64,000 nt of DNA from Monocercomonoides exilis PA203 (lineage: Eukaryota > Protista > Preaxostyla), in contig LSRY02000002.1 in NCBI GenBank assembly GCA_001643675.2, positions 372,001-436,000 of the forward strand, given 5' to 3'. The position numbers were made by a program, and so were the translations under genes. The notes below the pieces were generated by a model. It saw only the letters and a program-made list of their open reading frames with translations, did not search any database and had not been told where the DNA came from. Of the stretch, positions 53,966 through 64,000 are shown piece after piece. Position 1 is the first letter of the stretch, and every line of letters begins with the position of its first letter.

Positions 53966-54470
53966 AACTGAACTGTTCTTTTTTGAATTATGTGAAAATT
54001 TTGCTCATTTATAAATCTTTGGGAGATATTATATTTATCTCTCTCTTTATTTATTTTATTTTGCTTTATAAATTTTAAGATATGTATTCTTAAATCATTC
54101 ATGACTGTTCTTTTAATCTGTCAAAATTTTTTAAAACAACAACTTCTTTTCCATGAAAATTTTTGACTATTTAACTGAAATTTTTGTTTTTAATATTAAT
54201 TGGGTTATGTTCTTATAAAGTTCAAAGAATAATTTAAATTAAGAAATTTTGTATTTGGAGTCTTTTATTATAAAATGTATTACAAAAAAGGTCAAATATA
54301 TTTGTTCAAATAAATTCTAAATTTCAATATTTTGTATTACGATAACATTATCCTTTTTTAATGAATGGTGAAGAAATTGAAACGAATTTTTGTTACAAGT
54401 CTTATTAAACATATGAAATTGAAAATATACCTCTGTGACATGACAAAACGCTTGAAGCCTCGTCTGTCAC

Positions 54471-54471
<1 letters not shown>

Positions 54472-54518
<47 letters not shown>
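54472..54518 (+). repeat. Poly(A) homopolymer (~47 nt)
   Basis: Direct read. Similar tracts at 56713-56756 (A-rich) and 37728-37754 (poly-T, intronic). Confidence 0.9.
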
Positions 54519-54522
<4 letters not shown>

Positions 54523-55451
54523 TAATAAAATTAATAAAATTGAAACAAAATAAAACAAACGATAGTTAATTCTTCCAAAGACTTAATAAAGAGCTGTGGA
54601 AAAGATTTGTTGATAGCAACAGAAATATCTATCTTTTTCTATTTTCTCAGTGATTGTCAGTGAAGATCAATGACAAATTGTGACAAAAATATTCCTCAAC
54701 TGACATTTCATGTTGTTACATAACATGTTTGGCACTTGAACATCCTTATTAAAAATCTGATTTTTTCGAAAAATCCGAATTTTTTTGAAAAGATTTTTTT
54801 ATTGAAATTTCTGGTCAACATGAGAATTGAATGTTCTTATCAAATTTTCATTCCAACACACAAAAATTCACCAGATGAGCAACAAATCCTTGACAATGTC
54901 ATTATTTCCAATCCAGTTAAATTTGTTGAAAAGGAACGAAATTTTGATAAAAATTCTCATTTTTCGAATTCATTTGAAAATAAAACAAAAAGAACATTTC
55001 CAAAAATACACAGACATTTTGAAACAAAAAACATTAAAAAATCATAAATTTTTTTCAATGATTTGAATCTTTACAATGATCCACACTCCAAAATAAATAA
55101 ATAAATAAATAATGGTTTTTGATTTCGTGTTTTTTCAAACAAAAAGAATGAATTGAACATTTTTCAAACAATCTTGGAAGTCGAACAAATATTAATGATA
55201 ATGGATAAATTTTAATGAGCAATTACAAGTGTAAAATTTTCATGATTAATAGAAATCTCATATTTCTATGAAATTTTCGTTCTCTCTTTCGAACATTTTC
55301 AAGAATGAATCCAATAATGTTTCTTTGGACATAATTCTATTCCAGTTGGATAACATGAGGGGGAACAGAATTTTTATTAAAAATAGGTTTTTTTTAAGGA
55401 ATTTTTTCGAATTTAACAAACGTGATGAGACAAAAAAAAACTTACCAATTT

Positions 55452-55901
55452 CAGTCTATACCGGATATAATCACGTCGAATATAATCACATTCGTATATA
55501 GTCACATTTTTCCATGCACCGACGTTTTTGGCCTATTTTTCATTCAATTTCCATCGCATATAATCACATGGTTGAAAATATATAATCACATTTTTTATTA
55601 TTATGGGTGGATTTTTCATTGAAAAATCGACTTTTTGATCAAAATTTTCAGTTTTTCGATTTTTCAAAAATGTGCTCAAATAAGTCAAAATAATGTGTAT
55701 TTATGCAAAAAATTAATTTCGCAAGTGAAAAAAGTGTATTTGTGTAGAATTTCCAAAAATAAAAAAATCGACCCAAAATTAATTATTTCAAAAATTAATT
55801 TTTATTTTTTTCTGTGTAAAGCAGCATCGTATATTATCACAATCGGATATTGTCACAAAAAGTTGTGCAAAAACCGATGTGATTATATCCGGTTTGGACT
55901 G
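55452..55901. mobile_element. Non-autonomous Tc1/mariner-pogo-type MITE, 450 bp
   Basis: 27-bp TIRs: left CAGTCTATACCGGATATAATCACGTCG, right (reverse complement) CAGTCCAAACCGGATATAATCACATCG, 24/27 identical. TA flanks the right end and TT the left. Several internal TATAATCAC-like copies; no transposase ORF. Confidence 0.8.
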
Positions 55902-56725
55902 TAAATCAAAATCACCTTTTTTTTGAACTGTTTTCATCTATGTCCCATTGCGAATAATCGACATAAACGGAAATATCACAAAATACTATTTATTTATATT
56001 TTCAAAGATTTTGAATGATTTTTTTTACATTTTTTTATCACATTCAATTATGAAACAAAAAAATAAAATATGGGTTATTATTTTTGAAATCATAACTTTT
56101 TTCGGAGTGTTGATATTTCGAGGTTGCTCTCCACCGGGAAGAGATTTTGTTTAAAAATGCAAAAAATTATCAGAACTATATTTAAGACAAATGTTAGATC
56201 TGAATTTGAAACTACAATGTCTTTAATAATCCTTTTCTCTTTTCAGTGTTCTTTTAGTGATATTCAAGTGAAATTTTTTAACCGAAATATTTGAAAGAAA
56301 AAATATGATTACATAAATAATCTCCCATATAATGTTATAAAATAAAAAAACAAATAAATAAATCGATGTTTCGATTTTTTTCAAAGAAGAGAGGACATTA
56401 CAATTTCCATTTTTAATCAATAATAATTCATTAATTAAAAAATTCATAATTATTGACAAGAAGGTGGTTGAGATAATATCTGTTCAAAAAAAATTTCCAG
56501 TTCTGACAGTATTGTCGTTTTTTGCCTTTGAATAAAACTAACTTCATATTTCGAAACCTGATGTTTCATCTGATCATTTTTCTGCAAATGAATACATTAA
56601 TCTCTTCAAAGAAATCATTATTAAAACGGAGTTCAAATTGAATCCTTTTCCACTTCCCACCTTCACCAACAATGACAAGCAGCCTTCAACTTTATGTTTC
56701 CTATTACGAATGAAAAAACAAAAAA

Positions 56726-57049: not shown

Positions 57050-60000
57050 TTACTTTGCCACTCTGAAGCCATCATCATCATCATCATCGTTCGATTTTTT
57101 TGTTTTCTTTGCTTTTGTCTTTTCTTTTTTATTTGGTTTTTCCATTGTTTCTCCTTTCTTTTTGGCTAGCCATGCAGAAACCTTTTTCTTCTCTCCCGCT
57201 TCTTCATGCTTCTCCGATTCAGTTTTCTCAGAATCATATTCGACCGCAGGTGCTTTTCTTCCCCATTCATTCGCAGATTTCTCAGGTTCGTAGTCAACAG
57301 CTGGAGCTTTTCTGCCCCATTCATTTGCAGGTCTCTCGTGTTCATATTCAACAGCAGGAGCACGTCTTCCCCATTCATTTGCCGATCTCTCAGGCTCGTA
57401 GTCAACTGCAGGTGCTTTTCTGCCCCATTCATTTGAACTTTCAGAAGATTCAGATGGAGATGACGATTGCTGCATCCTCCGTGCCTTCCAAGATGGAACA
57501 GCTGTTGCTTTCGCTTCGCTGCTATCGTCTCCGCTTTCAACTGGAGAAGATGACGGAGATGGGTCAGGGGAGGATGATACAAGCCCTTTCTTCTTTTTCG
57601 CCCATTTGCTAGTGCTATTGTTTAATATATTTTCTCTCTTCAATCTTCTTTGCTCCTCTTCTTCTTTCATCTTTCTTTCCATTTCCTGTCTTTTTCTTTC
57701 CTCCTCCTCTTCTTCCTGTCTTCTTAATTCTTCTTCCTCTTGTCTTCTTCTTTCCTCTTCTTCTCTTCTCAATCGCTCTTCCTCTTCTCTCTGCTCTTCT
57801 TCTCTTCTTCTTATCTCCTCCAGCTCGCGCTCTTCTGCTTCCTTCTTTGCTTGCTCAATTCTGTGCGCATTATATTCGATTTTCCTGATAAACTCTTCTG
57901 CATCGGGAATCATCGGCAGCAGCTCCTGCTTCAGCTTTTGAAGGTTCTCAAACTCTTTTCTCTGCAATTCGGTCTTATCTTTCACAATCTTTTCGTAGTT
58001 TGCCAACCGTTCCTTCTCAATCGCTACCATCTCATCTCTTCTTCCTTGCTCCTCCTCTTCTCTGATGGCTCTCACTCTGTAATCGTGCATCTCCATTCGT
58101 GTACGTGCCTTCTTGTCATCTTCCAGCCTCTTTCGATTGATTTCCTGCCGTTTCTGCTCCACAAAACGGACAATCGCTGCTGCATCGTTTCTGTCAAGGA
58201 GCGTCCTCTCAATGACAATGTTGTGCATTGCTGCCTCATCTTTTGCTCTCTGGATACGCATCATGTCTTCGTGGTACCTCTTCTCCATCGCTTCCCGATC
58301 TGCTTGGATTTGAGCAGCTTCTTTCTCCTCCCTCTTTTTCTTCGACGCTTCCTGGCGGCGCTGTCTTTCCTCTTCTTCGATCATCTGCTTTCTCTTTGTC
58401 ACATCACGGTAGTCAACACGCAAGTTTTCTGTCTTTATTTTCTCCGCAAACCGTGCCTGAAGTGCTTCTTGTGTGTTAATAGCATTGTTAAACAGCTCCT
58501 GTCTCAGCTTGTCAGCACTCGAGTAAGTGGAGAGATATTTTGCATTTGCATATTCAGATGACGATGCAGAGCTGCTCTTCTCAGAACTACTTGATTTTCC
58601 ATCTGATGAACAAGACGCATTATCAATCAGCAGAACAGCGCCTCTCAGACGCTTCGCAAGCGACGGTAAAAAGTTCGAAAAAGGAGATGTCCCACCCAGA
58701 CGGATGGTTGTCGGAGCAGTTGAAACAGTACTAACAGTCGAAGTTAGACTCGATGAAGCTGAAGCAGAAGCAGAAGCAGATGCACTCTGTGCCTGCAATG
58801 CTGCAGTCTCCTCAGCACTGACGAAGACGTTCCAGCCGAACTGGACAGAGGAATAGCGATGACTAATACGGAAATGGAAGCCCAAGTTGTCTGACATCCA
58901 ACGAAGAAGAACTTCTATTTCTCGTTGGGACATGTTTGTATATTGGCAAAGATCAGCAATTTTCAATGATTGATAAACGCTTCCGCACTATGAAGAAAGA
59001 AATGAATGAATAAATAAGTGAATAATATCATAAAGTCGAATCATATTTCATAGTTGATAAAAGGAACAAAGTTGAAAAATCGAAACACAATGAAAAATTG
59101 TGAATGAAACAACAAAATTCAAAAATTAAAATACAATAAATATACAACAAATTAAAAACACAGTTTAATGAGAATACAAAAAAAGCAGTGACAAACCCTG
59201 AGAATCACAGCAATTCTGAGCATTTCTTTCAAGCGGTCAACATATTTCGCAAAGATACCATCAGATTCAGTTCCAAGGCGCTCGAGACATTTCGCTCCTT
59301 CTCTGCTCAGTTTGCGAGGAAGAAGACATTCTTCGAAAATTGAAAAGGTCTCTTGGATGAGAGGAGGCGCAACTGAAAGAAGATTTTGCTCTTTCTGCAA
59401 TTTAATAGGAAAAATTAAATGATTAAAAAAAAAAGATTAATTCAAAAAACATTCGAAAAATAAAATAAAACAGCAATAATATCAAACAATATGTGAAATG
59501 TATTCAGCGCGAGTCATGGTGGTTGTAGGTCCTAAAATAGAAGTCATCAGCCTCACTTTGTCTTTGTCCTGCTCAGTCTCTAACGCGACAGACACATTCA
59601 ATCCATCAGCAAAAGGAGCAGTTGTACCCTGTCTGAATGCAGACGATGACGAAGTCGAAGATGAAGTCCTCTCATTCAGAGCAGAAAATGGTGGGACCAC
59701 ATTGCGAGACCCTTCTGTGTGTGCTGTGTGTGAGCTGCAGATGGCTCCTAAGACAATGTGTGAAATCATTATCCCAGCTTCTTCTTGTGTCGGTGGCTTT
59801 TTCCCAGGCAGTAGACGCAGTTGCAATAACTTCAATTGTGCCTGAGAGTACCATCCGTATTCTTTAGCATCCCACAACAATCTGCTAAGAAGCTCATAAA
59901 ACTTCCTCATCACTGATGATCGAATCCCAACAGCTGATGGACCATTAACCTTCTGCGACGCCATACGAAGTTGCCAGAAATCTGCAACAAACACAAGCGC

Positions 60001-60835
60001 ATCTGCAAGAAGCCCCATTGAAAGTGCCACTTCAAGTGCATTCAGTCGGATCATCAACTGAACATGAAGACCTTCCTGATTTTGCAAAATTGCAGTAGAT
60101 GCTTGGCCAGAAAATAAAATAACTCCCTGAACGTGATATGATAGCTGCTCGCACAAGTAATATAATTCCTTCTTTCTATTTTCCTTCTTACAAAAATCAA
60201 GGGCCATATTAACGGTCTTTTGATAAATTCCATCAAGCTTCATATTTCCTTTTGTCATATCAAGAACAAATCTATACATATTCCACAAAAATCGTGCCCA
60301 TGGTCCAACAATTTCAGAGTTTATTTTTTCTGTGATCGCTTCATCTGGAATACCACTCAAAAACGTTGTAGTTGTCTGTGAGCTCGATGATTTTGCACGA
60401 ATATCAGCAATTTTTTTGGTAGCTTTAGCCTTCGCTGATTCATATTGATCCGTTGATTGCTTCAAAAGTTCTTCAAGTACATCTCCAAGTGATTGTGGTG
60501 CAGAAGATTGGGTGCTTAATTTATATTGTGAAAGACATTCTTTTATAAGATCATCTTTACGATTTTCAACAGAAAGCTTCACAAAGATCATTGCAGCCTC
60601 TTCAAGATCCTTATTCCATTCACGCCTTCGAGACAATGCTTGGTGCAAAGTGGAAAGTGCTGTGACTTTTTCTCCCACCTCAAGCATTTCTTTAAATAAA
60701 TAAGATTTTTTATACAAATACAACAAATGACAATTATCAAAAACAAAAAATATGCAATTATTACAATGTTTTGATATTAGCATGCACACTTTTTGCTTGG
60801 GCAATTTGCGTATCACCCCGAGAATAGTATGACAT
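57050..60835 (-). CDS. EIF3A: Translation initiation factor 3 subunit A
   Basis: Exons 60790-60835, 59488-60689, 59197-59394, 57050-58987. MLEVGEKVTALSTLHQAL..REW, IKECLSQYK, PWARFLWNMYRFVLD, VYQSLKIADL, long charged coiled coil with DYRVRAIREEE. Confidence 0.92.
57226..57440 (-). repeat. 54-bp coding tandem repeat x4 (NEWGR[K/R]APAV[D/E]Y..) in the eIF3a tail
   Basis: CCCCATTCAT recurs at 57261, 57315, 57369 and 57423 (period 54). Confidence 0.92.
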
Positions 60836-60895
60836 TGTTTTATTGATATCGCCAAATTCAAACAATGGCTAAGATCGACCGTTTGAAGTGTTTGA
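60836..60895. promoter_or_regulatory. Putative minimal bidirectional promoter (eIF3a / RSPH9)
   Basis: Head-to-head start codons only about 60 nt apart. Confidence 0.55.
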
Positions 60896-62539
60896 ATGGC
60901 TCAGATGGATTTTCAAGTTTGTCGCAAATTATTTCGTGATATTTGAATTACAAACAAATTATCCTTTTTCATCTATAAATTTCATTTAGCTTTATGATGA
61001 TGCTGGGGTGATATTTAGCCCACGAGACAAATCTCTTCTTCGTAACTCATTACCAATTTTAAAGGCTGAAAATAAACTTGGCTATGTTTGCAATTATTAT
61101 GAACTTATAAAATTTATATATTTATTATTTTTGATGATTTATTTGTTTTATGATTTTTATTATGAAAATGACAGATTCAATTCTGGGGAAAGATTGAAGG
61201 AGTTGTGAATGATTATTATATTGTTAAAGGCTGGGACGAATACATTGGCCCTGCTAGATTTTTTTATAGGTACATTTTTTTTCCTATCTTGGAAAGTAAA
61301 AAATTTTATTTGGATTAACAAATACATTGATCTTTTCATCCAAAAATTTCAGCACAAATTGTGCAGACTGGGCTCAAGTTCCAGAAGTAGATCCTCAAGT
61401 TGATGAATTATGCAAATATGAGCAAGGTCTTTTCATTGGAGATCCAACAGTGAAAACAAAATTTAGAGATTTGGTTTGTGTTGAACTTCATGCTAATTTT
61501 TAAATATTTTTGATAATGATATTATCTTAGATGAAATTAACAAAGAAGCAACCAACTGGAGAAGAAGGTGAAGAACCTATTGAACCTCCAGAAGAGGAAG
61601 AAGGAAAAGAAGAGGAAGCAGAGGAAGGAGCCGAAGAAGAAGATGGGGAAGAAAAACCAAAGAAAGTTCAAAAACCATTGAAATACTACACAGAGGACAA
61701 ACGTCTTGCAGTTGCTATTAAACACGTTTGGACAAAGATTTTCTGATTAAAAAATATAACTGTTTTTATTCTACGATATAACTTTTATATAATTTCACTA
61801 CATTTTTTTTGGATTTATTTGTTCACCATAATGTTCAGATCGAAAGACATTGCCAATCAGTTCCCATTGGCTACTTATACTTGAATTCAACTCACCACAT
61901 AAAACGAAACAAGACCTGGAAGGGCCTTTCGGAATTGGAATCTTTAAAACTTTCATCTTATCTTCACCAGCGAATGCCCCAGTCTCCGTTTATTAGGCAA
62001 AAGCTTGAGGTGAAAGGACTTTCAGATCCATTTGGATTTTTGGATCCTCTTGTTGAAGACAAGCCTGCTGGTATGAGCTTTCCACTTTAAAATCACAGAA
62101 AATTATGTCCATCATTTTTTAAATGAACTTATCAATTTTTTTGCGAATAAATGTCTATTTGACAGGTTGCTGGTCTCTTCAATACAACGGATTCGTCAAT
62201 CTTGTGCAGCTGCGTTCTCTGTTGTTCCCCGGATACCAGCTCTTCCTGAGGCCCAACGGCAGAACTTCTGTTGAATCAGGCAGTGACGACGAAGACGACG
62301 AGTTCGGTGGAAGTGCCTGGGGACAAGTGTATATTGGAAAAGGATTGATGAATGTAGACTTTCCATTTGAACTCCCCTCTGTTCCTATTGAGCAGACTTT
62401 CCCTCACCTTCTCGATGATATTCTCAAGGACAACGAAGCAGAAAGGAAGAAGAAAGAAGCTGAAGAAGCTGAAAGAAAGCGTTTGGAGGAAGAAGCACTG
62501 AGAGAAGCCGAGGAGGAACAAGAGGAAGAGCAGATGTAG
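60896..62539 (+). CDS. RSPH9: Radial spoke head protein 9
   Basis: Exons 60896-60916, 60990-61085, 61175-61269, 61353-61474, 61531-61725, 61839-62070, 62166-62539. FWGKIEGVVNDYYIVKG, GLFIGDP, EDKRLA, VPIG, WKGLS, FLDPLVEDKPAGCWSLQ, LRSLLFPG, VYIGKGLMNVDFPF. Confidence 0.93.
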
Positions 62540-62934
62540 TTAAATTTTTAATTTTTTGTTTTTGATGTAAAAGAACTCAATAAACACCTCACTTTTTCTT
62601 TTTCTTCTTCTGCACTCACTCTTATTATTGCTTTTCACAAAACAATCAGCTTGTAACTTATTTTTAATATAATTTTCTCATTGGAATATCAATGGGCTTG
62701 TGATCTAACATTCTATTTTGAAATTGGATTTCATAGCGCAAGGTTACGTTGCAAAGAGTGTGCAATTTGTTGCTATTCTATATTTTAAGGTTATGTTCTG
62801 AAATATAAAAATTTGATATTTCTCAAAACAATGAAATTTTACAAATGAACAAATTTGTTTTTCTTTTAAAAAAAATATGAACATTCCTTTTCATGAAATA
62901 GCAAGTTCAACGTACGTAATTTATATTGCATATA

Positions 62935-64000
62935 ATGGACAGAGTTGTTACAAAAGCTTCTCTTCGCCATCTTCAAGAAAATATTTCCAGATTACAAGTA
63001 TCTTTGAAACAATTTGAAGAGAGCACAAAAAGCAACCATCTATTTTTGCAAGTTTATTCTTCTTTGCGGAAAAAATGGCCTAGACACCAAGGAATCGCAA
63101 GTGTACTTACGGCTGAACATTTATTATCACTTCTTCAAAGTTATGATTCTATTGACGAATATCTGAAAATTGGCCTTCTGAGTACTATACTTGTTTCTTC
63201 AAAAAAGTTTATAAAACAAATTTCTCCATACGCGCAAAAATTTATCATGAAAACAATGAATGACGATCATATCCTGGTGTATTTTTTCGGTCATGTTGTC
63301 GAATCATTCTTATCAAGAGGGCAAATCACTTACAAAAGTCTTGAAACAATTTTTCCAAAATTAATGATGCAATTAGAAATCCTTCACGATTATATTCCAC
63401 CCGCTTCTGATTTTGGAAGATTGTTTAACCTTTATCCAAATCAACAGAAGTGTTCCGAAGATAGCACTTCTCGTCAATTTAAAGTTGCTAAAAATCTTCC
63501 AAACTTTCAGCGTTCTCTTTTTGAAGCAATTCCAGAAGCATCCATATTCCTTTACAGAAGTGACATTGACTATGATGAAAATGACAAGAACGATCAAAAA
63601 TGGTTCAACACAAATGATACCTCATTTTTGGATGAGTTTTGCACAGTGGAACTCGAAGAGCCAATCTCAAAGCCAAAAACTACATTTAAAATTTCGATGA
63701 GGCGCATGCCCCAGCCATTTTCCAAGACGCCTGCAAAGCCAACAGACGAAGTCAAACCACTAATCACACAAAATGGTGATTCTAGTATTCAAGACACAAA
63801 TGCCATCTCTTCTTTGCCAGCAGCATCACCTCAAAATCAAATTTCCCGCTCCTCTCTTTATCCTTCGTCTTATTCGTCCTCAAATATCACAGCAAACAAC
63901 ATCAACGACCACACTGACACCAAAGAAGAACTTTCTCCTTCTTCACTTTCCTCATCCACTTTTCCATCTGATCAAACACGCTCCATTTCCAAATCGCCTT
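62935..64000 (+). CDS. Partial gene; N-terminus resembles negative elongation factor A (NELF-A)
   Basis: ATG 62935 opens MDRVVTKASLRHLQEN...; I saw no stop, and its absence from the ORF track fits a frame open to the window end. It contains KWPRHQGIASVLTAEHLLSLLQSYDSIDEYLKIGLLSTIL...MNDDHILVYFFGHVVESFLSRGQI, followed by a Ser/Pro/Thr-rich region. The CDS is well supported; the NELF-A identity rests on manual alignment. Confidence 0.65.
   Translation, partial: MDRVVTKASLRHLQENISRLQVSLKQFEESTKSNHLFLQVYSSLRKKWPRHQGIASVLTAEHLLSLLQSYDSIDEYLKIGLLSTILVSSKKFIKQISPYAQKFIMKTMNDDHILVYFFGHVVESFLSRGQITYKSLETIFPKLMMQLEILHDYIPPASDFGRLFNLYPNQQKCSEDSTSRQFKVAKNLPNFQRSLFEAIPEASIFLYRSDIDYDENDKNDQKWFNTNDTSFLDEFCTVELEEPISKPKTTFKISMRRMPQPFSKTPAKPTDEVKPLITQNGDSSIQDTNAISSLPAASPQNQISRSSLYPSSYSSSNITANNINDHTDTKEELSPSSLSSSTFPSDQTRSISKSP

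Follow-up and report, generated by a model that had tools for sequence, protein, structure and literature searches.

Results

A 1471-codon gene at the end of the window

The window, by which we mean the whole 64,000-nucleotide stretch analyzed here of DNA from the mitochondrion-less protist Monocercomonoides exilis PA203, ends inside a long gene. An ATG at position 62935 on the forward strand starts an uninterrupted frame of 1471 codons, which closes with a TAG at contig position 439350. The frame extends 3.3 kb beyond the window end, so that the window holds only the first 1066 nt (62935..64000, +), encoding amino acids 1-355, and we read the remainder from the contig. An in-frame stop lies five codons 5' of the ATG. 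Across the genome (an 82.3-Mb assembly of 101 contigs) the gene has a copy number of 1. Its G+C is 0.30-0.37 over the N-terminal part and climbs to 0.45-0.63 over the tail. This ORF is a genuine, single-copy, intron-free M. exilis gene. An earlier reading made from the letters of the window alone (hereafter the sequence-only reading) had noted that the ORF track missed it, and correctly so: the gene is absent from that listing because its frame runs off the window end, and frames of this kind are left out.

An AT-rich intergenic spacer of ~395 nt (62540..62934, +) separates the ATG from the stop of the upstream gene at 62539. The region 61327-62539 (+) contains several short ORFs with an acidic, K/E-rich end and no Pfam match, and these are probably the exons of one gene directly 5' of the 1471-codon gene. 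The neighborhood is one of ordinary genes, and farther away lies the gene for eIF3a (57050-60861, -), which is present as two long ORFs. One (59482-60861, -) covers the N-terminal PCI/TPR part and has a PF22591 match at 1.7e-56, the other (57050-58966, -) covers the K/E/R-rich C-terminal part and carries NEWGR[KR]APAV[DE]YE repeats, and the ~0.5 kb between the two is a possible intron. A composition profile shows that positions 54001-56000 are very AT-rich, with a GC of 0.24.

The encoded protein has a helical N-terminal region and a long disordered tail

The N-terminal ~250 residues are of ordinary, hydrophobic-rich composition and are predicted to be helical throughout, as judged from low-confidence models. 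This region begins with an extension of 47 residues (62935..63075, +) that has no counterpart in human NELF-A and for which the same models, read for secondary structure only, suggest helices at ~aa 7-31 and 35-47. The core, aa 48-133 (63076..63333, +), follows, and further helices are predicted over aa 134-200 (63334..63534, +) from a low-confidence model. In total, the low-confidence AlphaFold2 models give a count of five helices and then three to four. When run without an alignment on aa 1-255 and aa 30-200, AlphaFold2 returned pLDDT values of 35 and 39, because the domain is without homologues. Both models are unusable as folds.

The remaining ~1200 residues (aa ~250-1471) form a disordered Ser/Pro/Thr-rich tail, the start of which lies in the window (63682..64000, +). 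From aa ~250 on, the composition profile gives a combined S+T+P+A+Q+N+G fraction of 0.58-0.84 per 50 aa, which bears out the low-complexity region that the sequence-only reading placed after the domain. The whole protein is 19% Ser and 10% Pro. Beyond the window, the tail (+ strand) carries K/E/R blocks (aa 512-534 and 748-772), two KKRGRK motifs (aa 812-818 and 853-858), an RGG box (aa 1431-1450) and poly-Ser tracts, and it finishes with an acidic C-terminal end.

The N-terminal core aligns without gaps to NELF-A

NELF-A is subunit A of the negative elongation factor (human Q9H3P2; structures 5L3X and 6GML), and its N-terminal domain is described by the Pfam family PF23553, NELF-A_N. NELF-A's N-terminal part comprises a five-helix domain, α1-5, plus a four-helix extended stretch, α6-9; the domain is structurally like the integrase-binding domain of PSIP1/LEDGF, and tryptophans W24 and W89, both invariant, insert into pockets of NELF-C (Vos et al., 2016; PMC4940160). 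The sequence-only reading had set a peptide at 63076-63333 beside a human NELF-A sequence. The peptide matches aa 48-133 of the ORF exactly, and the human string given there agrees with mouse NELF-A (NP_036044; Chivu et al., supplement file 74) at 76 of 80 positions. The proposed gapless alignment over about 80 residues also holds, with 16/80 identities (~20%), and so does the spacer after the tryptophan, which is one residue longer in M. exilis (x5 versus x4). Compared with the published supplement sequences of mouse, choanoflagellate and amoebozoan NELF-A, the M. exilis segment shows no gap and keeps one register. By alignment, and in agreement with the column test and language-model neighbors described below, the core corresponds to NELF-A residues 24-108, which make up helices α2-α5.

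Several family features are kept in this alignment. W48 (63076..63078, +) falls by eye at the position of invariant W24, and it is followed by the I-x-S-x-L-T start of α2 and, at column 17, by the expected aromatic residue. Also present are the [IL]-D-x2-[VL]-K-x2-L-L and D-x4-V blocks and a basic pair, K90-K91 (63202..63207, +), aligned with R65/R66 of RNA-binding patch 1. The overall architecture is similar as well, in that the M. exilis domain is N-terminal and precedes more predicted helices and then a long disordered tail, and the predicted helix count of 5 + 3-4 resembles the α1-5 + α6-9 of NELF-A.

Other features are lost or weak. The residue aligned with invariant W89 is a leucine, L114 (63274..63276, +). 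C-terminal to the core, FGRLFNLYPN (63412-63441, +) and QFKVAKNLP (63475-63501, +) are by eye weak counterparts of F-x-P-L-E-x-x-Y-L-N and H-F-x-L-K-K, the second at a compatible distance, but P, E, L and H, which are invariant in the family, are not retained. Apart from the weak QFKVAKNLP counterpart, the HF-x-LKRKP / HDAg-like Pol II-binding motif, a region that starts with H-F-x-L-K-[KR], is not recognizable in M. exilis; this region of NELF-A has been reported in animals and Capsaspora only. The M. exilis protein is also three times longer than NELF-A, with its RGG box and KKRGRK motifs. Finally, the conserved C-terminal domain that NELF-A has in holozoans and amoebozoans, with its end ...F-E-x-x-Y-x-x-G-x-W-[KR]-x-[LI]-[KR]-R-[KR], is not recognizable by eye in the last 200 residues, which contain the RGG box and then the acidic end.

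The NELF-A-like proteins of Amoebozoa (for example dictyostelids and Acanthamoeba) offer a comparison for a protein of this kind. They align with the M. exilis N-terminal domain without gaps, for example in an L-x-K-K-x-F block, and like the M. exilis protein they have low-complexity middles and K/E/R-rich blocks, at lengths of 600-1100 aa (Chivu et al., supplement file 77). Unlike M. exilis, however, they retain W89, F-x-P-L-E-x-x-Y-L-N, H-F-x-L-K-K and the C-terminal domain, and the genomes that encode them also encode NELF-B and NELF-C/D.

Alignment scores, and a column match above chance for this one protein

A hand tally with BLOSUM62 gives a raw score of ~46 against mouse NELF-A, or ~24 bits, which corresponds to E ~0.01 for one pairwise comparison. 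The raw score against the Dictyostelium purpureum NELF-A-like protein is ~42, so that the two comparisons span 22-24 bits. Scores of this size are adequate for one targeted comparison and far below database-search significance, in agreement with the negative HMMER searches reported below.

We also counted how many family-conserved columns are matched, using 23 residue classes that were picked by eye from published NELF-A sequences, a choice that was not blind since the M. exilis sequence had already been seen. The best placement, at aa 54, matches 15/23, while every other window of the protein stays at 10 or below. Shuffling aa 1-255 produced a score of 15 once in 20,000 trials (a per-protein probability of ~5e-5), and random positions with matching composition produced it once in 5 million. 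Among 276,000 positions in a six-frame background the maximum was 14. Judged by these sequence-based counts, the column match exceeds chance for this one protein; over a proteome of ~10 million residues, ~2 such matches are expected by chance.

Language-model neighbors point to the same family

A NELF-A_N cluster heads the ESM-Atlas feature neighbors of aa 1-255, scoring 0.93 and having 186 features in common with the query. Of the 30 neighbors, 14 come from the NELF-A_N family set, besides which just one family is named, Spt20_SEP (0.81). When aa 134-255 are submitted alone, the top three neighbors are again NELF-A_N clusters (0.90-0.85), although the two results are not independent of each other. 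The recognition value of 1429 is low, lying under the value from which the tool takes a high score as strong evidence, and the search as a whole is uncalibrated for parts of proteins.

Profile and database searches find no relative

The sequence-only reading had looked to a NELF-A profile to recognize the N-terminal domain, and in this it was disappointed. Pfam NELF-A_N (PF23553, cut-off 27 bits) gives no match at E<=10 to aa 1-355, to the full 1471 residues or to three pieces spanning aa 40-200, with the caveat that HMMER filters discard most matches above E ~0.1-0.25 and a weak PF23553 match could be lost in this way. The Pfam matches that did appear for the whole protein or its sub-pieces (TRIM_CC, ComA, L27 and API5) are at chance level only, and we rejected them. 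A six-frame search of the genome for the NELF-A_N family yields no candidate. Likewise, phmmer at E<=10 against the sequences in the PDB, NELF-A chains included, finds nothing for aa 1-255, 48-133 or 34-200.

Broader searches give the same picture. HMMER against 1.84 billion representative proteins finds no homologue of the domain; its sole match, a 1237-aa tandem-repeat protein, is an artefact that owes its score to chance matches of ~25 bits added up over the repeats. Word-index searches, one of them set to the usual length range of NELF-A, and a metagenome scan are also without a homologue. Across profile, PDB, HMMER, word and metagenome searches, the N-terminal domain is without a detectable sequence relative.

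NELF-B and NELF-C/D are not found in the genome

Six-frame searches of the M. exilis genome with TH1 (NELF-C/D, PF04858) and COBRA1 (NELF-B, PF06209) give no candidate for either subunit. The same search recovers the Spt4 control at 55 bits, which means that well-conserved copies of NELF-B or NELF-C/D would be seen. NELF-E was likewise not detected in the genome. A NELF-C/D gene that is diverged or split by introns may nevertheless be present. Six degenerate motif patterns, modeled on the NELF-C/D sequences that Chivu et al. give in their supplement for Paratrimastix, Trimastix and trichomonads, return chance matches only in the M. exilis genome; one of the six had an M-to-NPAD gap that was too short and was off its intended motif. 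The matches (a dispersed repeat, a Ser-rich 850-aa ORF and out-of-frame hits) were rejected as NELF-C/D.

Two of these sequences can be described in their own right. The repeat is a dispersed family, likely a mobile element, and was hit as eight 74-nt stretches that are nearly identical to one another and are spread over seven contigs (C16, C21, C31, C39, C53, C59 and C78). The 850-aa ORF on contig C58 (244-2796 of the extracted piece, +), which fitted the NPAD pattern by chance, contains extended Ser-rich tracts, is hydrophobic at its C-terminal end and, judged by eye, resembles a protein of the tail-specific-protease type.

The published survey of Chivu et al. (bioRxiv 10.1101/2023.02.19.529146) includes M. 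exilis in its files for CDK, cyclin, NELF-E-like RRM, Paf1 and Spt4, and does not include it in those for NELF-A, NELF-B and NELF-C/D. The survey lists NELF-C/D for Paratrimastix and Trimastix, which are sister lineages within the Preaxostyla, and for trichomonads, whereas no NELF-A-like protein or NELF-B is listed for any metamonad. The presence of NELF-C/D in Paratrimastix and Trimastix makes NELF ancestry in the Preaxostyla plausible. NELF-A-like proteins have already been reported in Amoebozoa, Apicomplexa, Heterolobosea and green algae (literature including Chivu et al., supplement files 74 and 77), so that the description of NELF as best known in animals, given in the sequence-only reading, understates the range of the family.

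Discussion

[quoted passage not shown] The reading draws on three lines of sequence comparison that converge, namely the original alignment, the language-model neighbors and the column test, together with the position of the domain and the architecture of the protein. Set against these are the empty profile and PDB searches, the substitution of W89 and the unrecognizable C-terminal domain. The original proposal of a NELF-A candidate is partly supported. Membership in the family is not demonstrated, because the profile and PDB tests are negative, the fold models are unusable and one of the defining interface residues is missing.

The strongest competing explanation is that the gene encodes a lineage-specific orphan nuclear protein, and that its resemblance to NELF-A is a chance likeness between amphipathic helices, to which the sequence-only reading and the language model both responded. 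Much of what we found would be expected in that case: HMMER, word and metagenome searches yield no homologue, Pfam and the PDB give no match, the ESM-Atlas recognition value is below the strong-evidence level, no NELF partner was found, and a column match of this quality is due about twice by chance in a proteome of 10 million residues. What makes the orphan explanation rather unlikely in our view is that the language model ranks first the very family that had been proposed independently by the sequence-only reading. In addition, the match is N-terminal, its register agrees with that of every family member, what comes after it is built alike, and the shuffle probability for this single protein is 5e-5.

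Less probable still is that the domain represents some other family of transcription-elongation adaptors with a small helical bundle, of the LEDGF / TFIIS N-terminal class, and that the protein recruits elongation factors independently of NELF. A small helical bundle within a protein that has disordered basic regions is indeed reminiscent of PSIP1/LEDGF, a disordered tail with basic motifs suits chromatin adaptors in general, and the missing NELF partners are easily accommodated. However, the M. exilis domain has no sequence or profile similarity to the integrase-binding domain, no Pfam family of the TFIIS N-terminal or LEDGF IBD type matches it at E<=10, and no such family appears among the language-model neighbors, where Spt20_SEP alone is named besides NELF-A_N. 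That there is no gene at all, and the frame is open by chance or through repeats, is scarcely credible: Ser-rich low-complexity DNA does hold other frames open here for 100-200 codons, but 1471 stop-free codons at a genome GC of ~36% are another matter, and codons 1-250 have no low complexity and an ordinary protein composition.

If the NELF-A reading is right, we can propose how such a protein might work. We read the protein as a nuclear-type scaffold, with a helical N-terminal part of ~200-250 aa and ~1200 disordered, Ser/Pro-rich residues bearing basic, K/E/R-rich and RGG patches. By analogy with NELF-A, the N-terminal domain would bind a NELF-C/D-type protein built of helical repeats. The long tail, in the manner of the NELF-A 'tentacle', would use its basic and RGG patches to contact Pol II, DSIF or nascent RNA. 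A more specific scenario, in which M. exilis retains a NELF-A-derived scaffold while NELF-B, NELF-C/D and NELF-E have been lost or are unrecognizable, seems doubtful to us.

The further suggestion of a NELF-type pausing or termination system in this organism is unsupported, because no partner subunit (NELF-B or NELF-C/D) was found, and the NELF-A call says nothing yet on pausing in the oxymonad lineage. If real, the protein is a new and very diverged member of the known NELF-A family rather than a system of a new kind. It would be the first NELF-A in Metamonada and, if its partners are truly absent, a natural case for studying the role of a NELF-A domain on its own. In the account of Chivu et al. 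(bioRxiv 10.1101/2023.02.19.529146), the most recent survey, NELF-B and NELF-C/D form the ancient core of the complex and NELF-A is a later addition; a confirmed oxymonad NELF-A would move this subunit back towards the eukaryotic root.
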